DNA of 64,000 bases. Origin: Oikopleura dioica (taxonomy: Eukaryota > Animalia > Chordata). How positions within the stretch are numbered: the stretch's first letter is position 1; each line of letters begins with the position of its first letter. The notes beneath the pieces were generated by a model. It ran no database searches. It was not told the DNA's origin and worked only from the letters and a program-made list of their open reading frames with translations. Of the stretch, positions 5,151-64,000 are shown piece after piece. Where the stretch lies: positions 9,548,001 through 9,612,000 of the forward strand of contig OU015566.1 of NCBI GenBank assembly GCA_907165135.1. Reading direction: 5' to 3'. The position numbers and the translations under genes are program-made.

Positions 5151-5222
5151 GGTCCTATGGTGTAATGGCTATCACTGTGGACTTTGAATCCACCAATCCG
5201 AGTTCGAATCTCGGTAGGACCT
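5151..5222 (+). tRNA. tRNA-Gln (anticodon TTG)
   Basis: Acceptor stem GGTCCTA/TAGGACC, anticodon arm GTGGA-CTTTGAA-TCCAC, T-loop GTTCGAATC; 72 nt. Confidence 0.97.
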
Positions 5223-13485: not shown

Positions 13486-15400
13486 ATGGATCAAGTCGTC
13501 AAGCTTCGAAAAGCTTCCGAAGATCGAACCGACTTCGAGGACAACCAGTTTGATCTTGATGATCGCGAGCATCGGGCGACTGTCGAACGAACTTTTCGAT
13601 TGAGCAGCCATCAGTCTATCACTAAAGACATGGTGTCTTTCATAGTCGATGGATCTCAATCCTCAGACATCAACCAAGGGGGTCTTGGAGATTGTTGGTT
13701 CCTAGCAGCTCTTTCGTGTATTGCCACAAAGGATCAGCCAGGAACTGAAGTTGCGAAAATCAAGGAAGATACAATTGAAACGGTCTTGCAAGTACGAATT
13801 CATATTTTGTTTACTAGCGCGTTATTTTGAATCAAAGATTTCATTACTTGACAGCTTATAATAAATCTCAGGTCGGCTTCAATAAAACAATGATGGCCGA
13901 AGGCACCGGAGGATTTAAATTCAAATTTTTCCGAATGGGCGAATGGGTCGATGTCGTTATTGACGACAAGCTGCCACTGAGAAAACGAGCTCGGCCATCT
14001 GATTCTGGCGAATGGTGGGTGCCTCTCACGGAGAAGGCATATGCTAAGTTCAATGGAGGCTACGAAAAAATCCAGGGAGGGCAGACGGGTCGAGCAATGA
14101 CAGATCTCAGCGGTGGAATAGCTGTGGATATGAACGACTTCGAGTACGGCCTTGGAGTCAATGAGAATAACACCATCAACGGAATCAATTTGGTTGATCT
14201 TCTCAAGAAAATCCAACGAAACGCGCTCATCTGCACATCAAACAGAGACGGAGCCGGAAACGAGCAGATTAGAAAGGGTCTTGTTTCTGGTCATGCTTAC
14301 TCACTTTTGGCCGTCGACACAATGACGTTGTCCGATGGAAGCAAAAAAGACATGGTCAAGATTCGAAATCCATGGGGACAAACAGAGTGGACAGGGGATT
14401 GGAGCGATAAAGACTCCGCTAACTGGAGCCGGTATGTACATAATTTATGACATGAATCATATTAATCTCATAATCGTTGTTATACGGTATATGATATACC
14501 GTATATCAGGCTAATAAAAACCAACCTGATTGACTTTTAAAATATTTTACGGCCGTTTACATGGTTGTTTTTAACAACAATCAAGTGTTCCCGCTGAAGA
14601 AAAGAAGCGCTTGAAAATGGATGAGGCCACAAATGATGGTGCGTTTTGGATGGCTCTTCGGGACTGGGTTGACGAGTTTGAAAATCTCGCCATCTGCGCA
14701 CTTCCAGGCTTGGATGTCAACGATCCGGATGGAATCATTTCAGAGGAGTGCGGTTTGGATAACATAATCGTTGATGCTAATTGGTTTTTAGAGAAATGAG
14801 GAACCGAGATCATCGAGTCAAAGGAACATTCCGACCTGGGAAAAATGCCCCACTTAACACCGGCCATCTATGCCAGACTTTCCGAAACCCAGTTTTCTCC
14901 ACACAAGTCGAGCTGACTGTCGATGCATACGGCGGAACGGATAGCCGTTTAGTCTGGCTCCAGGTGAGGCGATTTTATTGGCCGATCATCAATGCTGACA
15001 ATGGATGACCTCGAAATAGCTAATAACTTATTTTTATAGGTACTTACTGACACGCCCTTGAAAGAGAACCGACTGCTGATGGTGAACTTTTGGGCTAAAC
15101 GAAATGACGATTCTGAGTTCGACGGCCCGCAGACTTCAAGAAACTTCAGAAGGTTCAAAAAGATAGAACCAGTTATTCCAGCTTCACCTGGTTACAACAT
15201 TTCCGTCTACCAGCACAACGGCTTCTTACTCAACCTCAATCCTGGCAAATACCTCATTGTGAGTTAGGCTGACAGTTTTAAAGAGTAAATATTTTGAGAC
15301 CTTATCCTCATGCATGCAACAAAACTGCACCGACCCAGCTGACTTCATGGTCCGAGCGATGGGAGCAAACCTCAAACTTCGTCCCCTTACTTCGATGTAG
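13486..15400 (+). CDS. Atypical calpain (CysPc plus C2-like domain, no EF-hands seen)
   Basis: Catalytic motifs QGGLGDCW, GHAYS and RNPWG; [17 protein letters not shown] and FWMALRDW also present. Confidence 0.92.
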
Positions 15401-17437: not shown

Positions 17438-19506
17438 TTATGCTGAAGAGTTCAGAGGTCGTAGGTCAATGTTAGATCCCATTGTTCTCAACATGAATTT
17501 GACAGGTTTATTGGATTCGCCGGGGAGAGCAGTGCAAGCCATCTGAAAGAACGGTTAAAGTTTTGAAAAGGCTTTCGATCTTACAATAAGATATCTTCCA
17601 AGAGGGAGATTAAGCAAGAATCCGTTGTGCTTGTAGTGGTCGACAACGTAGCCCTTTTGAGTTGGAAGAATTGGGTCGATCTTCTTCATCTTTCGAAGCT
17701 GTCGCTTAGTCACGGGGCCGTCAAATGGCTCATCATCGTTCTTTTTGTAGATATTAACCATAACGTAGCGGGTCTCTTTGAGTGGGGAATCGATAAGGAA
17801 CTGGAAAGAGTTAACATTAATATTATTTAGAAAAAATGCACCTGGAGCCAGACAAGTCGGGTAGTTTCCTTGATGTAAAGATTGACGTTCATTTCGACTT
17901 GGATATTGTAGTTGTAATCCAAGAAGACTTTCTGGAGATGATTGACATCTAATTTCTCGATAATATATTTAATCAAATTTTTATCAACCTTGTGGAGCAT
18001 TAACTCCCGGAGTGAAAGTTCCAATAACGCGAGTATCTCGCTCATTTTTCTCTCTAAAACATCGTAAGACCAGATAAATGATTTTAACTAACTCTTCCGT
18101 GAAGTGACCGTCTTCGTCTTCAAGGTCCATTCCAGGGAGCGCGCAGATGGTCAGAACCTCAAACTCATCGACCCAGTCCTTGAATGTCATCCAGAAAGAC
18201 CCGTCATCTTTGTCTTCGATATCGAGTGCTTTCTTTTGCTCGTCGCTCACTCTGACAAAATTCATGAAATTCTAAAACCCACAAATGTTCGAAACCTGTC
18301 CCAATTAGCGGTATCTTTGTCGCTCCAGTCACCATCCCATTCTGTCTTGCCCCATGGATTTCGAAGTCTGACCATGTCCAATTTCGTTCCATCCTTGAGT
18401 GTCATCGTTTCAACGGACAAGAGCGCGTAAGCATGACCAGAAATCAAACCCTTGTTAATCTCCTCATTTCCTCCTTCATCGATGTTTGAAGTGCAAATGA
18501 GAGCGTTCCTCTGGATTGTTTGCAGAAGCTTGACCAAGTTGATTCCTTGAATAGTATTGTCGTCGTTGATGCCGATGCCGTATTCGAAATCCTTTCAAAT
18601 GATAAAAATTGTCTGATTGACAAAAGAAAATTCTAAGAGTTTTTTCACGAAAAGTTATATTCGCATCATTTCCTGAAGCTCGACCGCAATGCCACCACTC
18701 AAGTCGGTGAGAGCCCAGCAAGTCTGCCCGCCAACGAGTTTTTTGTAGCCGCCATTAAACTTGGCGTAAGCCTTTTCGGTTAGAGGTACCCAGAACTCGT
18801 TGGTATCCGATTCGCTGGCTCGTCGGCGCTCAGGAAGGCGATCGTCAATGACGACGTCTACCCACTCCCCCATGCGGAAGAATTTAAATTTGTAGCCTCC
18901 AGATGCGGCTGCTGCGCTCGTGTCGTTGTGTCCGATCTTAAAAAGTATCGTTTTAAAAAGGTTAAAACATTTCCTTGCTTTTTCTTTTTATAGTCTTCCC
19001 AGCCTTCGAAGAGGAAAATAAAGTCGTTTCAGCTTCCCTAAGGATTTTGCAACAACCAAAGCTAATGTTAAACGACCCTCTTTGGCTTGATAATTACCTG
19101 TAAGACACTTTCGATCGTTTGTTTTTTCAAAATACCGACTTGGGTATTCGGTTGATCGTCAGCTGCGACAGTGGAAAGAGCCGAAAGGAACCAGCAATCT
19201 CCAAGTGATCCCTGACTGACATCGCATGAGCTAAAGCCATCGTCACTAACGAACACAACCGGCATGGATTTATCTTTGACATCGATCTCGCTAAGTCGAA
19301 GGACCTTCTTGACGGTTTTTAGGTGAACTTCGTCTTCGAGGTTGAACGCGTCATCGGAAAAACGCTGCCGCCTTCAGAGGCTTTTCGAAGTTTTTGAACA
19401 TGAATTTCAGCCTCAGGCGCAATGTTATGGACAACAGTTGATTTCCCAAACTAAAATTGTTCTATTTTCCACGTTTTATCTGAATAAATACCTTTATTTC
19501 AGCCAT
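17438..19506 (-). CDS. Second atypical calpain, paralog of 13486-15400; apparent -1 frameshift near the N-terminus
   Basis: [18 protein letters not shown] and [11 protein letters not shown] present; shares KLRKASE with paralog 1. Frame shifts in an A5/T5 run at 19358-19362, and one junction (about 18975-19100) could not be spliced cleanly. Could be a pseudogene or an assembly error. Confidence 0.75.
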
Positions 19507-23081: not shown

Positions 23082-23444
23082 GTTCAAAGTTTGCGAGTTT
23101 AAATCAGCCAACCGCCAATCCTATTGAGTAATGATAACAGATCGGTGAGCTCCAACGCTGACAATTGAGTTAAAAGAATCGGATCATCAGAAAATCCGAT
23201 GAGATAGGCATTCTCTTATTTTAGACCGGCAATGACCGTAGTCAAAATCCGCAGAACCGTAAATCCGGTGACCGGATAGTTCCACGCGCTTATCGTGCCC
23301 TAGATTGACACGGGATCAGAGAAGAACGTGCTCAGGATTCAATGAATAAACATTTTCTGACCTTGATAAGATAATTGCTTATTATGCAAAGTCTGGAATT
23401 CTCTACTATTGCGTGAAGCAGGGTCTTCGGAAGAATAGGTTTAA

Positions 23445-24198
23445 GGATATAAGCTATGAATTTGAACTTTCGTAGCGCCTAAATGCGAAGTAGGATCATT
23501 TTCACTTCAAAAGTAATCCTACCTAAAAATGGACGTAAAACTCAAATCTGGTATTTAAAAAAAAAATTTTATAGAAAATTTTCCTTTTAGAGCGTTTTGA
23601 AATCTTACGCTCTCGATTTCTCGAAATTTTTCCACTAAATCGGTCGAGTTTTTTCGATGAATAACTTGTCTTAACCCTTATCTACAAAATTGACGGATCA
23701 GTTTTCCCTAATTCCGACCGAAACCGATTTTAGAGCCATTTCCATGAGGCTTACCCAGCGCGTGAATAGTGTAAAAAGCGGCGCGATGGGCGCTCGCTCT
23801 CTCAACTCTTCTTTTCCGTGAGAGTGGCGCGGGTGCCCCGAGCGCTTTGATTGGTTGCACGCGAAAAAGCACAAAAAGAAGAAAAACTCGAGCAAGAAAG
23901 AGGAAAACGCTAGAATGAAAATTTGAGGGAGTTTTGAAATAAAAGCCCATCAATTTTCTAGCTTAACATCATCAAAATAAAAGACACGGTTTAGTTTTAG
24001 CGATTCAATGGAAAAAATTCGAGCAATCGAGAGCGTAAGATTTGAAATCGCTCTAGAGAGAAAATTTTCCATAAAATTTTTTTCAAAAACTCCAGATTTG
24101 AGTTCTACGTGCAATTTAAGGTAGGACTGCTTTTGAAATGAAAATGATCCTACGTCGCATTTAGGCGCTACGAAAGTTCAAATTCATAGCTTATATCC
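23445..24198. mobile_element. Non-autonomous foldback DNA transposon with long TIRs and TTAA flanks (Kolobok-like)
   Basis: About 190-bp imperfect TIRs (GGATATAAGCTATGAATTTGAACTTTCGTAGCGCCTAAATGCGA... and its inverse) with TTAA on both sides. GG...CC termini; no transposase. Confidence 0.85.
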
Positions 24199-25313
24199 TT
24201 AAGTCGGATTGAAATCTAATATCTTTTGAATGCGATCGGTCAAATCTTTCTTTGCAAAGTTCGGATTAGAACTAAATCAAGTGGATAGTTCCGAAATGCG
24301 GTTTCGCGTTCACATAGGTCACATTTCTCAAGTTCTAACGCGACCTCGCCCAGGTGGCTAATCATGTATTCTAGCGGCTTCACTCTGCGCTGTCATGTCA
24401 ACTGCAGAAACCGAAATAAGGTGAACAAATGCGTCTGCGTAAATGGCAACTGTAAATGGAGCTCGACATGTGGCATTTTGAATGGGAGAAGTAGAATTTC
24501 GCCGGAAAAGGAGACAGTTGATTCGATAAGGACCATAAAGATTCAAGGTATGGGGACATTGATTATTGCTTTAGAGACCCTAGCTGCACTCAATTTTGAT
24601 AGACTCACACGTCATTTCATTTTTAGACGGTACATTTATCAACTTGAGAGACTTCATCGACTACATCTCGACTTGGGTAGAGAAATAAATAAGAATAATG
24701 AAATCTCTTCTGTATAAACATGTATTGTTATTAGTTCCTGCCGTAAATAAATTCAATCATATCAAAGTTCAATTCACTACCATTTGTTGGATTTGTCAAC
24801 AGATCACAATCCAATTGTCTGGCACCAGAAAACCGAAATTATTTACGGATGCATGTCACATGCAGCATGTGACACCTTTTTTTAGGAGCCTTCTTTTCCT
24901 CCTTGTCAGTCGATATTTGACAAATACTACTGGATAATTACTGCATCTTCAAAATAAAGTTGCGATGGTTCAAGCAGGAATATTTGTATGTACCCAAACT
25001 TTGCAACCGGGAGAATTATTTTCACTTTGTTTTCAAACAAGTGTAAATTTATCCGAGGTAATGTGCGGTCAAATTCACTAGTTTCAAATTGCATTGAAAT
25101 TTTATTCGAAAGTGTCCATTTGCTTTTGATACAGAACTTGTTGGAGAGTAGTATAAATACAGTAGTGTCATCGGTAGTAGAGATACAGAGAGTGAAAATA
25201 TAAAAATAGGGTTGAACTGAGAATAAAAGAAAGCTACAAAATGTAGCTAAAATTGAGATGCGGAAATCGCGGCAGGTTAAAACAGGTCGATTTCCATTCG
25301 ATTACAAATTTTG

Positions 25314-47859: not shown

Positions 47860-50800
47860 GACATCGACTTTTTTGGCGAGCCCTACTTTAGAGACATACT
47901 GTATCTTTTTACCTCTTTTTTTTTCAATAATTAACCGTATTGAATTTTAGATTGAAATCGAGAGGTAGAAACTTTCCTCCCTAATCGCTCCTAGCACACT
48001 CGATCGAGTACCGATTCTTCTGCAACAAGTTCGGCTGGAAGAACGATCTTAAGGAGCTTCTCCGAGAAATCTACTCCTTCGACAAGCCCGAAGCTGTCAT
48101 GCCCATCACGCGATCAGGTAAATAAACATTCTGAAATATATTTTACTATAAAAAAATGATCAAAATTATTAAAAAAGTAACCCATATCTTTTAGGAGCTG
48201 GAGGAAATCTCGTGATTGTGGAGGATGAGTCTTCAACTCCCGATCAGAAAAGGTAAGATAAAATAGAACTCAACCCCGACTTATCAAACTTATTCAGCAC
48301 CCAGCCCTGCGTCGAGAACCAGGCACCGATTCAAGAGCCACCGACGCCCGTTGAAGGGCAAAAAAGGAAAGAAGGGGAAGAAAGGCAAGAAGGGCAAAAA
48401 AGGCAAGAAGGGGAAGAAAGGCAAGAAGGGCAAAAAAGGCAAGAAGGGGAAGAAAGGCAAGAAAAAGAAAGCCTCCCCAAGCCGCCAAGCCCCAAAGCCC
48501 CCCAAGCCGCCAAGCCCCAAGCCGCCAAGGAGGATATGCCGCCTCCTCGCAAGCGTCAGCGGCGAGGTGGATACAAGAGGGCCAGGTTAGTTTTTGAGAT
48601 TTTTTTTTTTGGGAAAGGGAGAAAGCCTCTCGCCTCATAAATAATGGGGATAAAAATGAACATTTTCCCTGTGTACCTGATCAAAATTGGGGTAAACGTC
48701 TCGATTTTTTTAAACGCTCGAGACAGGGTTATGATTTAGAGATTGTGAGTTTGGCAAGGGAAGAGTGAGGTAAGGCTCGGGGTTGTTACAGAGGTTATAA
48801 AGGGGAAAGAAGAGGGGTCATACGGAAACTTCTTAGTACGGACCTGGGAGTCTGACAGAGAACGGAACGGATCCGCTGATTTTCTCCATACTTACCTCTG
48901 TAACAACCTCGAGCCTTACCTCACTCTTCCCTTACCCAACTCACAATCTATAAAACTTAATCTCTAGTCATGTTCGCTGGTGAACCTGGAGACCTGAGGG
49001 TGGAAGGGGTCATACGGAAACTTCTTAGTACGGTCCTGGGAGACTGGCAGAGAACGGAACGGATCCGCCATTCCTCAGGTCTCCAGGCTCATGAGCAAGA
49101 GCACGATTAGAGGTTAAAACATAGTAACCCTGTCTCGAGCGTTTAAAATAATCGAGACGTTTACCACAATTTTGATCAGGTACACAGGACAGGGTCAAAA
49201 ATTATCCCTATTTTACTCAGGTACACAGGACAGGGTCTCAAATACAGGATTCTACATAGCTCAGGTTGCTGAGCTCAGTTAAGGTTAAACGTAGGACCTT
49301 GAGTCGAGTCAGAGGAAAGGAGGTGGAATCAAGGGAATATAGCAGAGGTAATAAAGAAAAAAAAAAGGAAGGGGTCATACGGAAACTTCTTAGTACGGTC
49401 CTGGGAGACTGACAGAGAACGGAACGGATCCGCCTTATTTTTCAATGTTTACCACTGCTAAATTCCCTTGATTCCACCTCCTTTCCCCTGACTCGACTCA
49501 AGGCCCTACGTTTAACCTTATCTGAGCTCGGCAACATTACCTGAGAAAACTTGAGAGTCAAGATACACTGATTCTCCACCATAAGGGTGATTTTCTGATA
49601 ATAGGACTGTAGGGTTGAAAGTTGTCTTGGTAAAAGACAACGGTTATAATTTTTATGTGTGAACTTGGTCGAAAAAAAACCCTGTGTTTAACCCTGAGTC
49701 TGACCTGAGTACCTGACTGAGTGGGAAGGGCTTTCTCCCGAAATTAATTACAGCGAAATTAATACAGCATAAATTTAGGGACCGTAAGTGTCTCACAAGA
49801 AAGGTGTTTGCGAGCGCGATGAAGTCGGAGGGCCAGTATAATCAGCGATTAATAAGAATCGTGCAAACGGCAAAAACATCAGCCAAATTTAAACGGGTGC
49901 CAACCATACAACAAGCTGATATCGACAAGCTCAACAGCCGCGAGAATCCGGTAATTTATAAAAAGAAAAAAGTTTTAAACGTTATTTTTTAGGTCAACAA
50001 AGAGATCCTTCGAGCATTGGGAGGATACGATGGGTGGAAGCTAGGACATGTATTGAAGGATCTCTACAAGCAACAGGCAAAAGGCAAAGAAAAACTCCTA
50101 CTCCCACATCCCGACTCCATAGCCAAGGAACAGGCGGAGAATTTGGAGCAACAGGAGATTGAAAATCTCACCGACGAGGAGATGGAGGAAGAGGAAAGTG
50201 TCTTCAAGTGTTATGATCACGATTCGTTCGAGGAGAGGGAGCGACGGATAAAAAAAGACAAGTTTGCGATCTCCAGAGTCGCCCTTCTACGTAAGTCAAA
50301 CATTTTCGTTTCATTCAATGAGATGTACTTTTAGGATTCGAGATTCCCACACTGCTGAAAAACGACAAGGACTTGCGCTACAGGTCACGGTACGTCTGTC
50401 TGTACTCATGGTGGAACGACTGGATAGAGGGGGTTGCGCCGTTCACAGATCTAGAGTGTGCCATATTCAGCGAGTTCAAGCGTACAAACTCGGCAGGCGG
50501 CAAGATGGCAAAAAAAACGGTGGATGCCCTCGACAAACTCTGGAAGGAGCGAGAAGAAAGACAACTCAGGCATCATCGTTTTAAAAAACATATGCATCTA
50601 TACCACCCGCATCTGACAAAGTCACGATACAGAGCAAAGAGAAACGCCCTCATCAATAGATTGTCTTTTGCAAAGGTGCTCACCCTGGACAGATTCATGT
50701 AAGTTTACTTTTTGAATTCTTATACTTATATTTCTCCTAGGAAACACAGCGTTCTCGTCGACCCGGCGGAAGATTTTGTAAAATTTAAAGACGAGGAGCA

Positions 50801-54917: not shown

Positions 54918-55612
54918 ATGTTCCCGACCGGCCCAAACAAGGATGACAAGCGCAAAGAGAGACCCTTGATCTCCTTCAGTATGTTACAGATCATCAGCAA
55001 ATTCTAAAATGATATTCAGACGTCCTGAATTTCTCTATCGTTATCCACGACCCCGTCCTCGCCGTGCTCTTCGTTGTTTTGCTCGTCGTTGGCATCTTGG
55101 CTCTCAACTTTTTCCAAGGTAACAGCAGCTTATTAGAATCTTATCCAAAATTGAATTTAGCCCGAGCTCGTCATCTCCTGGGTCGAGCTCGAGTACGATT
55201 TCAGCAAGTTCTACCTTCTCCGCTTGAAAATGGCATCCGAAGGATTTTCCCAGGCCTCTTGCTGGTAATAATTCAATCTTTATTTCAATTTTTAAATTTT
55301 TAAGCCGACCCTTCCAAGACCAGAACCAGCGATCATGGCCGCACCGAGACAAGGACCAATGATCCTGCCCACAATCGACGAGCCTCCCACAGTCGATGAG
55401 CCTCCCCAACCGCGCCAGCGTCCACGACCAAGCCAGATTCCAAGACGTCGAGCTAGACCTCAGGAATACGGTCGAGCGGAGATCGGACCGGTAAGAGTTG
55501 ATTCAAAAATTGTCTTCTTACATATGTTTAGCCAAGCCCGGAACCAACTCGTAATGCACGACCCCGAAGATCGCTTCGCAAAAACATCTTCAAAGGAGAG
55601 TACGGACAATAG
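54918..55612 (+). CDS. Single-pass membrane protein with Pro/Arg-rich tail, 5 exons
   Basis: Introns 54979-55019, 55119-55160, 55265-55304 and 55491-55531 (40-42 nt, GT-AG) give one open frame; TM segment VLAVLFVVLLVVGILAL. Confidence 0.75.
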
Positions 55613-56160
55613 GTAATCCTTTTAACACCATTCTTATCTTATTGTAAATTTTATGCTCTTCGATTCCGACATATCCTGCACATTCCAATCCCACGTCATC
55701 TCTCTTCGCAAACACTTCCGCTACACGAAAGCCAGCGCGCGAAATCTTAGTTCTGTACATTTCCGCTACACGAAAGCCAGCCCGTGAAATCCTAGTTCTG
55801 TACATTTCCGCTCTTCTCAAATACGCTCAATAAATATCGAATGCATTCAACCAAAAATTTGGTCTTATAAGCAGCCAGAATTTCAGCAGAGGCATCCAGA
55901 TAAAAAAAATCAGCCAAAATTACTTGCATCAACCAAAAAATGGAAAAAGCGAATAAACTCGCAACCCAACTTCGAAAGCAGTTCAATAACTTGTCAACCA
56001 CAATGCTTATGACTGCATTGAAATACCAGGAGGAAGCAAATCATATCCCAGTTGAGCACGCAGATGAATTTACTGAGCTAACACGTAAGTAAAAAGTGAA
56101 AACATCGCTAATAGCTTTCCTGGAAAACTCGCTGACAGTCTCAACATTGACAACGAAGCC

Positions 56161-56802
56161 GTGGGCATCATTGAAAATCTTCTTCTCGCAGAAACAGACG
56201 ACGAGCTCTCTCTTCACTCATCCAGCGAAGAAAGCGACTCCGAAGAAAGCGACTCTGAAGAAAGCGAGCCCGAGTCGACCTGGACTCAAGGTCACATTGT
56301 TGCTGACAGCGGTGAGCAGTACGGTTTGGTCTGCGACGCTTCTACTCAAACAGCTGATTCTGGATATCTTTCCCTCATGGAAGACTACCCGATTGCCTCT
56401 CATGATCCCGTTTTCGACACAACTCCCGAAATCAGCCCCATTCAGCCAAGACTCATGAGACTCAACGCAACTTCAACAGATCCTACACCAATGCTGATCG
56501 ATATCCCTGATGATGTTTCCCTTGGAACGCTTTTCGAAGGCATGATTGAGCCAGAAAATCAAGACTATGTCACTCTTGAGGAGCTAGTTAATCAGCAATC
56601 TACAATGACCCCACCGAAAAGCCCAATGCTGATCGACATCCCTGATGGAATCTCTCCTCTGCAATCTGAAATGATGGATACTACAGCTTGTGTCACACCA
56701 CCAAGAAAAATCAACCGCAACAAAAAAGCACGAAAGCCACGATGCGCTCGACGAATCTTTCCAAGTAATATAACGCAAGCTTTCTTATCTAATTGCTTTT
56801 AG
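56161..56802 (+). CDS. Orphan acidic Ser/Asp/Glu-rich protein with a basic C-terminus
   Basis: 213-aa ORF with SEESD repeats, duplicated PMLIDIPD and RKINRNKKARKPR. True start not resolved. Confidence 0.55.
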   Translation: MGIIENLLLAETDDELSLHSSSEESDSEESDSEESEPESTWTQGHIVADSGEQYGLVCDASTQTADSGYLSLMEDYPIASHDPVFDTTPEISPIQPRLMRLNATSTDPTPMLIDIPDDVSLGTLFEGMIEPENQDYVTLEELVNQQSTMTPPKSPMLIDIPDGISPLQSEMMDTTACVTPPRKINRNKKARKPRCARRIFPSNITQAFLSNCF

Positions 56803-56971: not shown

Positions 56972-57343
56972 ATGATTGCAAAAGTTATGAGAAAATTCGA
57001 TGTTACTTTTGAGGGTGTTTCCCCGTTCCTTTTTATAGGAGAATTATTCTTGAGCGAGACGCCTTATCAGATTTTTTACGACCAAGACGGCAATCTAAAG
57101 AGCACTGGCTTTAGAAATCACATTGCACAAATATCAACAGGCTGTCCTTATTCAACAAAACAGGAATTTGAGAATCATTACAATCTTAGATTTATTGAAA
57201 TTGAGCATTATCGAAGTAAGTTGATAAGATTCAAGAATGAAGCGTTTTGGTCGAATAGAACTTGCTTTTATGAACAAAACGGCGATCGTTTTCTTGTGGT
57301 CTATCCCATTCTTTCTCTTGCTGAAAAACCTACATATGCTTGA
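56972..57343 (+). CDS. Hypothetical 123-aa protein directly upstream of pPolB
   Basis: Intronless ORF whose TGA overlaps the proposed pPolB ATG (ATGCTTGA). Confidence 0.5.
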   Translation: MIAKVMRKFDVTFEGVSPFLFIGELFLSETPYQIFYDQDGNLKSTGFRNHIAQISTGCPYSTKQEFENHYNLRFIEIEHYRSKLIRFKNEAFWSNRTCFYEQNGDRFLVVYPILSLAEKPTYA

Positions 57344-60300
57344 TAAACGTTTCGACAAAATATCTGATTTTGCTATTGAAATGCCCGACTTAAAGTTCTT
57401 TAATTATCACGGTGTTTTTTCACATGATAACTATCTATCCATCGCGAAAGAAATTCGTCGTGAAATTTCGATTTATGCAAGATCAAATCAGAACCAAGAA
57501 AAGAAAAGAATGCGCTTCCAACGAGTTGGTCGATTCCGTGTAAAGGATCCCATCAGTGAGCCTCTCAATCTCTTCCTCAAACATGATGAACCAACAAGGA
57601 TTTTCGTCATTTTCAATCATAAAGGTAGCTCTTTTCGTCCGTAAGAATTCTTTATTTTTTAAGTTATTGAATCCAATCTGTTTCGATGTGAAAATATCAA
57701 TTGCAACTTGTCTTTCACAAGAAAGTTGGAACTCGAGCGCCATGACTGTTCCAGAGCTCGTCAAATAGAACCAAGTCTCAAACCGTACGGTAAAAACATC
57801 AATCCCCTTGTCGACATGATCGAGCTAGGCGTTTTGGATCGTAAATATTCAAAATATCGAAAGACGTCATTTGGTATGTGCGTATTGAAACTAAAAAATT
57901 AAATGATTTCTAGTGAGCTTTGATATAGAAACTTACGAAAATCCGTTGAATGAAAAACGACAAGAAACCGAAATCCACTCGTCTCTCAAACTGCTGTCAA
58001 TTGGAATCGGGTCAAACTTTGGATACGAAAAATTCATAGCTCGCCAAGGAGACGATTCAGATCACGCTCACAACATGGTTGAAGAATTTGTCTTTGCTCT
58101 CGAAGAGCTCTCTCAATCACCAGAAACTGCTCTACCTCTGGATTTTGACGTTGCTCTTGAAAAGCTTAATGAGCTTATTCAAAACGGTGAGTTTAATTTT
58201 ATAAGCAAGTTTACATGACTTTATAGAGACAAGCATCAAGGAAAAAATGCGATTATCATCTTTGCGAAATCAGTTCAAACAGTACTGCGTCATGAACGTC
58301 TTCGGATTCAATTCGGCAAAGTTTGATTTGGTTGTCTTGGCACCTTATCTCATCCCATTACTCAAGGAAAGGTATCCAAAGTCTTTCAACGTAATTAAAA
58401 AGGGATCCTCCTTCTTTATCGTCTCAACAGAAAGATTTGTGTTCAAAGATGCCATGCTTTTCGGAGCACCGACAAGTTTGGCTGGCTATCTCAAACAGTC
58501 TGGAATCACAGAACAAAAATCAATCTGGCCATACGAGCTTTTTCATAGTGTCAATGATATTCGAAATTGTTTTCAGTTTCCTAATTACGAGAGTTTTTTT
58601 TCGAATCTCAAAAGTTCCAATGTTGATTACGATGATTATTTGACAGAAATGAACAAATTTGAAAGACTCAAAGCGCAAAATCCGCAAACAACAATGATGG
58701 ACTGGCTCAAGCACTACAATATGCTAGATGTCAACCCTTTCGCCAAGGCAATCGCGATTCAATTCGAAATCTTCCATGAAGCATTCGGAGTGGATCCATC
58801 CATGTGCAGTAGTCTACCGAAGTTTGCAATGATCTGCCTCTTTGATTTGTACTCAAAATCATCGCCATTGTCTTGTAAGTTGATAATATAGATTCTTTCC
58901 TCAGATTTTCAGTTTCTTTTGGTCCATCAAGCGCGGAAGAACATCAGTTGTTTCGTGACAATATTATGGGTGGACTCGTCAACGTATTTTCACGATACAC
59001 AGAGCTACGAGAAGATGTTTCTGCTCCTCACAATGCAAAATTTGCTCCGAACGGAGATAAATTTACGAAAATAATCTTTCTTGATTTCAATGCATTGTAT
59101 CTCTATGCTCAGAATCAAGAAATGCCGACAACACCTGGTAATTATTCTTACTCAATTTTATTTTAACTTATATAATAGGAATCCGCTGGATTCGTGATGG
59201 AAATCTGTTTCGAAAGCAGATCATGTCGAGTGGAAACAGTCTCGCTGCTCTTGAATGGCTCACTTTCATCGACGAATACAGCCCGTTGCTGATAACCAAT
59301 GATGGCAAACGCGTTCCACTAGAACATCAATACTACCGTGGCGAAAAACAACTTTTCGACTGGACGATCGACGGCTACGCTCTTGTTGATGGTACCGAGC
59401 TCTTCTTTGAGTTTCTTGGCTGCTACTACCACTCTTGCTGTCCGGAATGCAAGCCTGGACAGACAGATGAAAATTGGGAACAAAAGAAATCCTACCTTGA
59501 AAGTCGAGGACAGCTTATCTTCATTCATGAGTGCGAATGGAAAAGACTCTCTTATCGTCATTTCAAAAAACGATCTAAACATTGGGGACTGATGTTTCAG
59601 CGGCACAATGAAGAGGATCTTCTCGCTGAAATCAAGGATGACAATGTTTTTGGATTCATCGTCGCTGATATTCACTGTCCTGAAGAAATCGAGGCTAAAA
59701 TCAAGCATCTCAACTTCCCTCCAGTTATACAGCGTATGACTATAACTGAGGATTTGGTCTCTCCATACATGAAAGAGCGAGCAAATGCAGCTGGTAGAAA
59801 GATTGAGCAGAACACCGTCGTTCAAACCTTTAACGGCACTCAGCAGCTGATATTGACAAAAGTGGCAAAATTCTACATGGATCTTGGACTAAAAGTAAGA
59901 AATGTCTCCCGTTTTGTCCAGTATCGTGCTGATCGCTGTCTTGGGAACTTTTGCAATACCATTACTGAAGGACGGATAAAATCGCTTGAGGAGAAAAACA
60001 AGTCACTTGCCCTTGCTTTCAAAACCGTCGGCAATTGGTATGTTACAGCAGCTGATTTTCTAATAACTTTTTCTTTAGCGGCTACGGCAAGATGGGGGAG
60101 ATTGTGGATCGTCCAAGGGTCAATTTTTGCAATGAAGATCAACTTGCGAGAGCTGTTCAAAAACCAAACTTCAAGTTTACGGAGCCGCTCACGAGGGAAG
60201 ATGGAGATTACGAACTTTCACAAGTGACAGTAACACCTTCAAAAATCATGGACAACAAACCAATCGTTCTCGCCGTCGCGATTCTTCAGCAATCGAAATT

Positions 60301-60974
60301 GTTATTTCTACGATTCGTCTATGATTTTCTATTCAAGTACCTCGAGGAAGGAAGTTTCAAGCTCAATTATTGCGACACTGATTCATTAGCGATCTGTGAG
60401 TTGAATACTTTTTCAAAATTTACATATTTGATAGCAACGACGAGGACGGCTCCATCGGGCGAAACGCGCAAATCCAAAATTGCATCGACTTTCTTGCCAA
60501 TTGTGAAGCCGCATCTTCGAAAAGCCTTTTTACGAGAATGGCAGAACTGGTTTGTTTTAAAAGACACTCACCGTAATGAGAAAACTCCTGGTTTGATGAA
60601 AAGTATGAAACGCTCATTTCTTTAAAACTAACGTTTTTTAAGCGGAATGGGAAACAGACTGTGGTGCTCTTATAGCTCTTGGAAATAAACTCTACATCGG
60701 AATCGATCCTGAAACTGATGAAAAGAAGAGATCTACAAAAGGAATTCCTCACAATGTCGAAATCGAGTTCGAATCAATGCGAAAATGTTTGAAGGGCGAA
60801 GTTCTTGAAAACAATAATTTTGATCTCAAAACTCTGCGCCGTCAACCGTCAAATGGTTTAGTTTGCCGGACGAGTACTTCAAAGCGCCTGCTTAGTGACG
60901 TCTTTTTTAAGTTCTATGTTGAAGCCGATAAAATAACCTGTAAACCATTATCAAAAGATGGCAAGCTGCTTTGA
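57336..60974 (+). CDS. polB: Protein-primed family B DNA polymerase (Polinton/Maverick type), 9 exons, about 1106 aa
   Basis: Zn-finger CENINC..F...LERHDC; ExoI DIET, ExoII FNSAKFD, ExoIII YNMLDV; PolA DFNALY, PolB KTVGN|CGYGKM, PolC YCDTDS. Removing 8 GT-AG introns gives 3321 nt of uninterrupted frame. Confidence 0.93.
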
Positions 60975-61033
60975 AAACTGATCATGTGTGACGCCTCTGT
61001 ATAAAACTGAACTCTTTCTCAAAACTCAATAAA

Positions 61034-61579
61034 ATGCCTTTTAACCCAACTGAAAGATCTGAGCTTTTGAAACTTACGAATTTATTTGGAAGCGAGCAAC
61101 TCACTCTCGACGATGACGAGTATGCTTTCTTTGAGAGAATAGGAAATATGAGACAGCTGAGGAATTACTTGATCATCAATCCTCCAAAACCAAATCGGAT
61201 CGTCGAAACTGCTGTTTTGATTCTGCTCGTTGATGATCAATTTGCACTGACCGAAGTTTTAAACGCTCTCAACGAGTTTCTCAATCCTCCGTACCGGCTG
61301 CTCATTGACTTTTCCTTTTTACTTGAAAAACCAGATGCGATAGATGAAGAGAGTCGATTCCGATACTCTTGGGCTCAAATGAGTACCAGCTTACCTCTCG
61401 ACATCAATCTTATCAAAGATGACATATCTTTCGAAAAACTCTTGACAGAGCTTCCTTCAATGCCTGAAATTCCTGACATTGTTGCACGATCTCATTCCAA
61501 CCAGAGTCATTATAACGAGTCTGGATATCAGCTCCGAAAAATTCTAACCTGCAACATATTCATAACCAAATTTGAGTAG
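61034..61579 (+). CDS. Hypothetical 181-aa intronless protein of the element
   Basis: Clean ORF preceded by TATAAAA and followed by AATAAA. Confidence 0.65.
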   Translation: MPFNPTERSELLKLTNLFGSEQLTLDDDEYAFFERIGNMRQLRNYLIINPPKPNRIVETAVLILLVDDQFALTEVLNALNEFLNPPYRLLIDFSFLLEKPDAIDEESRFRYSWAQMSTSLPLDINLIKDDISFEKLLTELPSMPEIPDIVARSHSNQSHYNESGYQLRKILTCNIFITKFE

Positions 61580-61701
61580 AAATTTTATTTCTGAAAATAA
61601 CACCGAAATAAAGAAAAGAAATTTCAGAACCGCAGTAATTTGTAAGAGCAGAAAACACAAGCACAGAGCATGGTAATCGAGAGAGTCGGAATCAGGAGAT
61701 T

Positions 61702-61983
61702 TTAGTCGGAGTAGCTTGTCCAGTCCATGTTGTCGAGGACGAAGTCGTAGAAAGTAAGGTTATTCCGGATGTCAAATTCTGTCTGAGTTCTTTTTCCAAT
61801 GATGCAGACGCCAATTTCTCCGGCGATGAGATCCGGGAGGGCATTATCAAGTTCTTCCTTCTTGAAAAACTTTTTCAGTTTCATCAGCTCCCGTCGATTG
61901 TCAGAAGTTCCAGTGATCGTGACGAAAAATCCGTACTGTTTGGCAACTCGGACGGAAAAAGAAATAACTTGAAATTTGGTCAT
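61702..61983 (-). CDS. Hypothetical 93-aa protein of the element
   Basis: ATG-initiated ORF with a TATA-like sequence upstream on the minus strand; convergent with 61034-61579. Confidence 0.55.
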   Translation of the reverse strand: MTKFQVISFSVRVAKQYGFFVTITGTSDNRRELMKLKKFFKKEELDNALPDLIAGEIGVCIIGKRTQTEFDIRNNLTFYDFVLDNMDWTSYSD

Positions 61984-62337
61984 TTTCGTTTGTTTTTTCA
62001 GTTTTCTGAATTTTGATGAGTCTACTGAGATGGGTACCGCTTAAATATATTTCAATTCATGCTCTAGTAGATTTGACCTTTTACCCGTGAAATATCAATT
62101 AGCAATATCAAGATGTAAAAGAATCTACCGATTCTGAGAACCAGATGTAGATACGGCTATTATTGTTACACATGTCTTAGAAAGCAGATGCAACCATGCA
62201 GATAGCGGAAGCAGCGGCTGTGGGAACTCCAGATTTTAATCCGATTACTATCAGCCGGACGTACATTGGCGCCATCTTAGCGCTAGACTAAGTTCTCCAT
62301 ATTTAACTCCACCCAAAACACGAAACTCCATCAAATT

Positions 62338-62919
62338 ATGTCAAATCTAACAAACCAAAAGCCTCTTGTCGGCTTCAACACTCGAGCAAACGTCGTCTAT
62401 CGCAGCAAGAGTCCTTGGTCTCAGACCATCTACGCAGAACCTATCTACGAAGAACCTCCAAGCCCTATCTACGACCCAAACCATCCCGACTACGACGCTT
62501 CAGTCTACGACATGCACATTTCAGGAGATCTGACTTACAATCCTGTCAGCCCAGTCTACCAACCCGACGACGCTTCCTCTGCCAGTGACTTCTCCGACAG
62601 CGACTCCTCTGACAACGACTCTTCTGAGAGCGATTCTTCCGACAGCAACTCCTCCGACAGCGACTCCTCCGACAGCGATTCATCCGACGACGACTCCTCC
62701 GAAGACGATGTCATCACAATCTCAGACGACGATCACATTACAATCTCAGATGACGATGTCATCATGATTTCCGATGATTCAATCATTAGCGTCTCTGATG
62801 AGGAGCCAATGGAGATTGACGACGAGCCCGTGCAAGGCTGCGAAGAATGGGAAACAGCTCGGCAACGCTTCATCCAGCATCACATTGACATGGGCAACAT
62901 CCGAACAGAAACCGACTAA
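62338..62919 (+). CDS. Acidic disordered protein with DSDSS repeats and a tandem SUMO-interacting-motif array
   Basis: 193-aa ORF containing VITISDDD-HITISDDD-VIMISDDS-IISVSDEE; AATAAA downstream. Confidence 0.7.
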   Translation: MSNLTNQKPLVGFNTRANVVYRSKSPWSQTIYAEPIYEEPPSPIYDPNHPDYDASVYDMHISGDLTYNPVSPVYQPDDASSASDFSDSDSSDNDSSESDSSDSNSSDSDSSDSDSSDDDSSEDDVITISDDDHITISDDDVIMISDDSIISVSDEEPMEIDDEPVQGCEEWETARQRFIQHHIDMGNIRTETD

Positions 62920-63047
62920 TTTTTCCTCCTCTACTCTCATACTTCACCTTAGATTACTGTTTTTCTATTGCTGTGCTTAACCTGCTGTAAATTTTGTCTT
63001 TGTAATAAAACACCAAAAACCTTAAAATTCAGTGTTTTTATTGACAG

Positions 63048-64000
63048 TTAAAGAACTTCTTTTTCGACAGAACCATGCTCGTCGATAGTGATTTTTACAG
63101 AGTGACATGACCAAATTACAAGCGTTTGATTTTCCGATGGATTTTCTTTGAAATCAAGAACGAGATTCAACCATCCTTGCGTTTCTTCTGCTCCAGAAAA
63201 CTCATGCGCAAAAATTGCTGATTTTTTGAATTGGTCAAGTGACAAGGCAACTCCTGAAGTCGTCGATACAAGTCTATCAATAACATCCATAAGACGAAAA
63301 TATGGCCAAATCGGAAGCTCATTCGTTATTTTCTTAATAAAAAATAAGTTTTGAAAACAATGGTGATAACTACCATCGGGAATCCCAAGCAAGATTGACC
63401 ATTCAGAGTCAAATTGACGTTTTGCAAGTCTTCATGAAATGCGAATCTTGTCGTCTCTCGATTAAGTGACCCTTGAAAGGACTCAGTATCCGTGAGCGCA
63501 AAGAAGAGGACATCAGGCGTGTTTCCTCCCTTGATATTATGAAGGGTGATATTTGACGTGTTGGCAGGTAAGTCTCTGGTGGAAACAGTAATTTCCTGGT
63601 ACTTGTATGAAATCGGCTTCGACTTGATTCGAGAAAAATAGTTGCGCATCGAAGGACTTGTTACATATTCACAGAGAGCATAACAATCTTTTATTTCAAG
63701 AGGTTTTCCCTTATGAACAGCTGTGGCTGGGGTTGATCCTATGTAAACCGTAGAAAACTCCGAATTGAGTCGGTTGAATTTGAGTTTCATCGTTGTATTC
63801 AATGGCAGTGGCTTGTTATCCAAGCAGAATCCGTTACTTGGAAAAAATACAAGCTCGTACACATAATAATCGCCATCCTGAGCGCACTGTGGACGTCGTA
63901 ATGTTTGCAGCAGTTCTTTATCAGATTTCCTTTCCAAGTAGTCGTAGACTTCGTGGTCGTAATAGCCTTCAATCTGATACGCTGTCGAAACATAGTCTCG
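63048..64000 (-). CDS. Polinton-type double jelly-roll major capsid protein, 3' part (1 intron)
   Basis: LPLNTTMKLKFNR, FFAL..ESFQGS...TRFAF..LQNVNLTLNG and LNLVLDF..P..N.TLVIW resemble Polinton MCP (recalled pattern). Intron 63333-63373 (41 nt, GT-AG) restores the frame. Confidence 0.78.

Follow-up and report, generated by a model that had tools for sequence, protein, structure and literature searches.

Spliceosomal-type introns in the polymerase and capsid genes of a probable Polinton/Maverick-type element in Oikopleura dioica

Introduction

Can the core genes of a Polinton be split by introns of the kind found in its host, and still encode intact proteins? This question is raised by a locus on chromosome 1 of the marine tunicate Oikopleura dioica (Okinawa assembly), at one end of a stretch of 64,000 nucleotides (nt) that we analyzed (GenBank assembly GCA_907165135.1, contig OU015566.1, positions 9,548,001 to 9,612,000 of the forward strand; hereafter the window, numbered from its first letter). 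The region from 55.9 to 64.0 kb probably holds the left portion of a Polinton/Maverick-type element that has integrated there, and in which the gene for a predicted protein-primed DNA polymerase (pPolB) contains eight short introns and the gene for the major capsid protein contains one.

Core genes of vertebrate and nematode Mavericks have been described as intronless (PMC8097293; bioRxiv 10.1101/2022.07.12.499685), and survey pipelines likewise assume that Polinton genes are free of introns (PMC10120064). An earlier reading of the window, made from its letters alone and referred to here as the original prediction, had started from a description of Polinton core genes as generally intronless or intron-poor, and these three sources agree with it.

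Results

A polymerase gene with eight short introns

The pPolB gene lies on the plus strand at 56972..60974. With its eight introns removed, each of the nine exons reads openly in the frame it needs, and a codon walk yields 1106 codons with no internal stop, followed by a single terminal one. All eight introns begin with GT and end with AG, with lengths of 39, 40, 40, 38, 41, 41, 39 and 40 nt and a GC content of 15–31%, compared to 41% in the exons. The original prediction had placed GT-AG introns of 38–41 nt at these same coordinates, had given the spliced frame as 1106 residues with its exonuclease (Exo) and polymerase (Pol) motifs intact, and had noted that one intron interrupts motif B, all of which held up in the analyses described here.

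Intron 1 (57625..57663) contains an in-frame stop and is in phase 1, as are introns 2 (57874..57913), 3 (58187..58226), 4 (58875..58912), 5 (59138..59178), 7 (60396..60434) and 8 (60603..60642). Intron 6 (60038..60078) is in phase 2 and falls inside motif B. Intron 7 is in frame and stop-free, such that its retention would add 13 residues to the protein. In a mechanical scan for GT[AG]..AG stretches of 36–55 nt, with an AT content of 66% or more and an open frame to either side, six of the eight (introns 1, 2, 3, 4, 6 and 8) came back at identical coordinates, together with the capsid-gene intron described below. Among the eight introns, phase 1 accounts for seven and phase 2 for one; the strict candidates from the host part of the window number 5, 6 and 4 for phases 0, 1 and 2, and these samples are small.

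The splice model was tested exon by exon, each exon being searched singly. When the exons were compared by BLASTP with long relatives (designated by P numbers), neighbouring exons were found to abut, a one-residue gap corresponding to the split codon. Such one-residue gaps are seen in the O. dioica gene models P0271, P0272 and P0151 and in the uninterrupted metagenome open reading frames (ORFs) P0031, P0052 and P0274. Exons 2 and 3 abut in P0271, exons 3 and 4 in P0272, and exons 8 and 9 in P0031, P0105 and P0271. At intron 1, the flanking exons are 3 residues apart in P0271 (363 to 367) and show a one-residue gap in P0272 (97 to 99); intron 4 was seen in no relative. Against a profile built from 17 relatives, exons 2–9 align at consecutive positions, with a gap of one position at three junctions and of three to seven elsewhere. 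Because the exons abut both in the relatives and in the profile, chance GT..AG stretches and decay can be ruled out as the source of these intervals. AUGUSTUS models of relatives, which were hinted with RNA-seq data (method: PMC8008620), yield proteins with the same junctions, although this bears on splicing only indirectly. The introns show the GT-AG ends, the host-typical length and composition and the exact restoration of frame that characterize spliceosomal (U2-type) introns. The mutual likeness of the eight polymerase introns is no higher than that of shuffled controls, which speaks against an introner origin.

The start of the gene is a separate matter. The original prediction began the frame at the ATG at 57336, but similarity to the coding sequence of relatives extends upstream of this position, and an ORF that opens at 56972 aligns with N-terminal portions of their polymerase models. 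Hence, the pPolB gene may begin further upstream; the introns and the frame downstream of 57336 are borne out. A 43-nt GT..AG stretch upstream of 57336 was entertained as an additional intron and discarded, since coding similarity to P0271 continues through it and no relative shares it.

The predicted polymerase and its two extra domains

The catalytic motifs are visible in the exon translations: exon 3 carries ExoI, exon 4 both ExoII and ExoIII, exon 5 motif A, exon 7 motif C and exon 9 KxY. Motif B is divided between exons 6 and 7. PF03175 is present in relatives aligning to every exon, and the 17-relative profile matches the phi29 DNA polymerase in PDB (E 4e-5) across the motif-B junction. 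On these sequence comparisons, the predicted product of pPolB is a protein-primed family B polymerase, in line with the homology to Polinton polymerases that the original prediction had called for. Neither single exons nor the ORFs neighbouring the gene gave a meaningful match in Pfam or PHROGs, and phmmer searches of exons 4 and 6 against PDB returned nothing.

Exon 2 encodes a stretch resembling a C2H2 zinc finger (57681..57776, plus strand). Exon 2 alone gives a weak match to the Pfam zf-C2H2 family (E 0.0078), the family profile matches C2H2 fingers in PDB (E 8e-10) at positions mapping to this exon, and relatives of pPolB carry PF00096/PF13894.

The second extra domain, an insert of the Vsr nuclease type, lies in exon 6 (59334..59537, plus strand), between motifs A and B. 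An Asp, a Gly, a His and several Cys residues of this insert are invariant or present in at least 90% of 31 relatives. The family profile matches the Vsr endonuclease structures 1vsr, 1odg and 1cw0 with E values of 0.0011–0.0016, which is marginal in score but specific. The match covers profile positions 694–761, equivalent to residues ∼52–119 of exon 6, where the Cys/His-rich insert lies. Single-sequence searches against Pfam, NCBIfam and PDB were empty, and NCBIfam searches with exon-6-sized relatives gave no Vsr match.

A double jelly-roll capsid gene with one intron

At the end of the window, on the minus strand, lies the major capsid protein gene (63048..64000). The window stops within it, leaving about 54 N-terminal codons past position 64000; the visible part is free of breaks. 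The encoded protein is compact (∼356 residues) and 81% identical to P0175 (O. dioica chr1.g1241). Sequence searches found no family match for the capsid family, profiles against PDB and Pfam giving chance matches only. We modeled P0175 with AlphaFold, together with 56 relatives, and obtained a pLDDT of 86.2 and a pTM of 0.86. The best Foldseek matches of this model are PBCV-1 Vp54, the capsid proteins of an iridovirus, mavirus and Sputnik, and the adenovirus hexon, all with a probability of 1.0. Also among the best matches are capsids of nucleocytoplasmic large DNA viruses, adintoviruses and virophages, and E values for this set range from 1e-12 to 1e-5. MELD-virus capsids are matched too. Judged by the modeled fold of this close relative, the minus-strand gene is a double jelly-roll capsid protein gene, which agrees with the capsid homology claimed earlier.

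The capsid gene carries one GT..AG intron, 41 nt long and in phase 0, at 63333..63373 (read from 63373 to 63333 on the minus strand). The original prediction had likewise given the capsid gene an intron of 41 nt. Once these nucleotides are removed, the junction agrees with the relatives. Placement of the intron at 63318–63358 was considered and rejected, because the relatives fix it at 63333–63373.

One relative bears on what lies beyond the window. In the gene model P0186, an rve integrase core (residues 10–88, E 1.5e-10) is fused to a capsid part (residues 220–524). This fusion suggests that the integrase and capsid genes adjoin, and the integrase gene probably lies just past the window end.

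The introns resemble those of the adjacent host gene

The host gene immediately upstream of the element (54918–55613) has four introns of 41, 42, 40 and 41 nt, with 12–29% GC. Across the host part of the window, the scan returned 15 strict candidates of 38–46 nt. The median intron of O. dioica is 48–51 nt (PMC8008620). In size, GT-AG ends and AT-richness, the introns of the element match those of the adjacent host gene, and are thus in the local host style.

The gene block recurs in the genome

A search of the whole library with exon 6 retrieved 897 relatives. One O. dioica genome contains at least six polymerase models (chr1.g14, g794, g1235, g2977, PAR.g10449 and YSR.g17157) and at least four capsid models (chr1.g95, g793, g1241 and g2986). 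Three polymerase/capsid pairs are 1–9 gene numbers apart (g794/g793, g1235/g1241 and g2977/g2986), and two further genes described below, gene A and ORF181, are kept beside the polymerase in other copies. The block therefore recurs at several places in the genome, and represents a family of elements rather than one domesticated gene. Two of the polymerase models fall in one 90% cluster. The closest copy found to the polymerase of the window is P0271, with 72.5% protein identity over 1097 residues. Hundreds of relatives come from marine metagenomes, on contigs of up to ∼22 kb, and the named relatives include a snail protein (P0279, Bradybaena similaris, 25% identity).

One intron appears to be widely shared

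We used the end points of uninterrupted ORFs among the relatives as an indication of where their introns lie. At the exon 6/7 junction, within motif B, 77 ORFs (24–50% identity) stop no more than 25 residues after the junction and 38 run through. The pattern differs elsewhere. At the exon 4/5 junction, 51 uninterrupted relatives run through and none stops; at the exon 5/6 junction, 70 continue across it and 11 ORFs have their start in the 30 residues that precede exon 6; at the junction of intron 7, 4 read across with no residues added and 9 stop. At the capsid junction, 53 uninterrupted relatives (27–44% identity) run through, and the four closest ORFs (51–74% identity) stop.

Going by these end points, the motif-B intron looks to be common to about two thirds of the related ORFs, down to 24% identity, and hence old and widely inherited. 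Other introns look lineage-specific, and intron-free relatives exist. Two cases at the motif-B junction may be mentioned. In the P0010 group of metagenome sequences, one unbroken ORF spans the equivalents of exons 2–6 and ends 14 residues past the junction. The metagenome ORF P0171 reads on with 22 extra residues at this point, resembling an in-frame retained intron.

Other features of the element and of the window

The order of genes is gene A, pPolB, three small ORFs and then, on the opposite strand, the capsid gene, with the element continuing past the window end. Gene A (55940..56802, plus strand), first in the conserved block, encodes by translation an acidic protein rich in Ser, Glu and Asp. 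Residues 16–229 of P0271 (O. dioica OKI2018_I69 chr1.g1235) match 56015–56733, and so gene A also lies upstream of the polymerase in another copy. The protein contains SEESD repeats and one seven-residue motif that is present twice, and the gene model of the other copy fuses gene A with the polymerase. For the exon join inside gene A, even the best canonical candidates lead to a wrong frame or rely on a poor acceptor, which leaves room for a non-canonical intron.

Directly downstream of pPolB is its conserved partner ORF181 (61034..61579, plus strand, 181 residues). It is 42% identical to residues 1292–1465 of P0151, an older O. dioica model in which ORF181 and the polymerase are fused, and it has no match in Pfam or PHROGs. 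A 93-residue ORF on the minus strand (61702..61983) has no family match in these two collections either; an identical protein is on record in NCBI. The third small ORF (62338..62919, plus strand, 193 residues), also with an identical protein in NCBI, encodes a Ser/Asp repeat tract specified by a 15-nt tandem repeat (62556–62720). The tract is followed by four copies of a motif like those that interact with SUMO, each a hydrophobic quartet plus acidic residues.

The left boundary of the element falls somewhere in 55.6–55.94 kb. Near where it must fall, two tandem 45-nt repeats (91% alike) occupy 55712–55801, between the stop codon of the upstream host gene and an AATAAA signal. No inverted repeats involving the element region were detected in the window, which can contain one element end at most. 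Pfam and PHROGs searches of 55.9–64.0 kb found no penton protein, FtsK/A32-type packaging ATPase or adenain-type protease.

The remainder of the window consists of animal genes, including those for TM9SF, calpain, a sugar transporter and a LIM protein. A tRNA-Gln (TTG) at 5151–5222 is the sole match to Rfam or by ARAGORN in the window. A nest of repeats at 48335–49542 comprises a purine-rich array with a 9-nt period (48335–48478), three 88-nt direct repeats and several nested inverted repeats. Two inverted-repeat pairs lie further to the left: 14133–14433 / 18294–18594 (301 nt, 73% complementarity, 3.9 kb apart, beside a calpain exon) and 23441–23642 / 24001–24202 (202 nt, 89%, 358 nt apart).

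Discussion

We regard 55.9–64.0 kb as probably belonging to a Polinton/Maverick-type element, of which the window covers only part. As in the Polintons/Mavericks of animals (polintoviruses), a protein-primed B polymerase and a double jelly-roll capsid are encoded in one block, and the block is multi-copy and integrated in an animal chromosome; in the gene model of one relative, an rve integrase is joined to the capsid. The Oikopleura element differs from these in having eight polymerase introns and one capsid intron, and in its compact capsid protein. In its Vsr-type insert within the polymerase domain and its marine host, it resembles the pPolB2 Polintons with a VSR insert from marine molluscs and the nematode Trissonchulus (Jeong et al. 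2023, PMC10748475); it differs in residing in a tunicate and in having an N-terminal C2H2 finger and introns. The text on those Polintons makes no mention of spliceosomal introns (PMC10748475). Adintoviruses and MELD viruses (Starrett et al. 2021, PMC8502044) share the Polinton gene repertoire in animals, and their capsids are among the fold matches, but they were reported as free viral contigs, whereas the Oikopleura element is chromosomal, is known from its genes alone and has genes that need splicing. The nearest precedent for intron-bearing Polintons is provided by the introners of eupolintoviral proviruses in dinoflagellates (PMC12166617). There too, intron-type sequences occur in Polinton-like integrated elements, and elements that copy themselves as DNA carry introns along. 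Those introners are multi-copy, transposon-derived introns in protists, whereas the Oikopleura introns are ∼40 nt long, mutually unlike and in an animal. No paper that we found connects Oikopleura with Polintons, general surveys of transposons apart, and introns in some Polintons may have been remarked on before.

Several observations weigh against this interpretation. The window shows no integrase, ATPase, protease or penton protein, and neither terminal inverted repeats nor a target-site duplication; all of these would lie beyond it, and the link to an integrase depends on one fused gene model from another strain. Compared with the models of its relatives, the polymerase gene changes frame once, outside the 1106-codon frame; a genuine frameshift, an indel in the assembly or two ORFs wrongly fused in those models could each account for this. 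The original prediction called the element intact, for which a window that ends inside the capsid gene offers no support. That the introns are removed from the transcript is something we infer from the sequence. Intron sharing was deduced from the end points of ORFs and not from the DNA of the relatives, which were moreover sampled via exon 6, such that junctions distant from this exon are thinly covered. The polymerase and capsid proteins of the window itself were not returned as annotated proteins, unlike two of the small ORFs between them, and pPolB (56972–60974) and the capsid gene (63048–64000) seem to be unannotated or modelled differently in the public annotation. Finally, with a nearest copy just 72.5% identical in protein, there is no sign of recent movement of the copy in the window, and the suggestion in the original prediction of an active or recently active lineage finds no support in it.

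Three other explanations deserve consideration. The one that survives best, which we nonetheless judge unlikely, is that pPolB and the capsid gene belong to something distinct from a strict Polinton, namely a related element or endogenous virus devoid of the integrase/ATPase/protease set and terminal repeats. None of these parts is inside the window, as this explanation would have it, but the rve integrase fused to the capsid gene in P0186 speaks for a Polinton. The extra polymerase domains, the C2H2 finger and the Vsr insert, could likewise be taken as signs of a different element; on the other side, Vsr-insert pPolB has been described from genuine Polintons of molluscs and a nematode (PMC10748475). 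The capsid protein is unusually small at 356 residues, another point for this explanation, and its fold matches, which include adintovirus, MELD-virus and virophage capsids, count against it.

Slightly less credible is domestication, in which a Polinton long ago supplied the polymerase and capsid genes and these have since become ordinary genes of the host, introns included. The original prediction had offered this as its alternative. The host-style introns and the open catalytic and capsid frames speak for it. Against it, a single genome has at least six diverged polymerase models and at least four for the capsid, linked in the same way and with the gene block repeated. The copy in the window has no near-identical sister (best 72.5%), consistent with a resident host gene; against this, two polymerase models share one 90% cluster, the model of one relative joins an integrase to the capsid gene, and marine metagenomes contain relatives by the hundreds, with contigs reaching ∼22 kb. 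Domestication is disfavoured by these data.

A decaying pseudogene, its ‘introns’ being chance GT..AG stretches around insertions and frameshifts, is close to refuted already, for although there is one frame change in the polymerase gene versus relatives and the rejected 43-nt stretch shows that such stretches arise by chance, all nine intervals are 38–41 nt, AT-rich and GT-AG, removal of each brings back the exact frame, exon ends meet to the residue in relatives and family profile, several junctions are common to distant relatives, and 1106 codons run without an internal stop.

If the locus is part of a Polinton/Maverick-type element, nuclear transcription of its genes would fall to host RNA polymerase II, and the messages would be readable only through the short-intron spliceosome of the host. 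The element would copy itself as DNA, by means of its protein-primed polymerase and an integrase, and daughter copies would inherit the introns instead of losing them. Since DNA copying would keep introns in place, one gained a single time, such as that in motif B, could mark a whole clade. The introns may have been acquired while the element resided for a long time in a lineage whose introns are known to turn over rapidly, and the polymerase would belong to the Vsr-insert branch of Polinton polymerases known from marine molluscs and a marine nematode. Intron positions common to distant relatives indicate that the lineage kept diversifying while carrying introns. On a broader and more tentative view, which we hold to be possible but somewhat doubtful, there exists a marine clade of Polinton/adintovirus-like elements, in appendicularians and perhaps other zooplankton, whose motif-B intron predates divergence to ∼25% identity, and which spread as DNA with this intron in place, further introns being added by lineage. 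If this is true, nuclear, spliceosome-dependent virus-like elements would have been overlooked by standard surveys that are blind to introns.

Prokaryotic gene finders are in common use for surveying integrated DNA viruses and Polintons, the stated reason being that such elements lack introns (PMC10120064; 10.1101/2025.04.19.649669). An intron-rich family would be cut by these tools into exon-sized ORFs and largely missed, and it is in this form that the relatives appear in protein collections. The introns would also tie expression of the element to a host spliceosome tuned to introns of ∼40 nt. In an element copied through DNA, the introns are heritable characters, and positions that are shared or private would record how long, and in which hosts, the lineage lived in the nucleus. 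Among species with fast intron turnover O. dioica is a classic example, and a multi-copy family with datable copies may offer a way to follow intron gain and loss. The Vsr-insert branch of polymerases, so far known from molluscs and a marine nematode, would be extended to a chordate.

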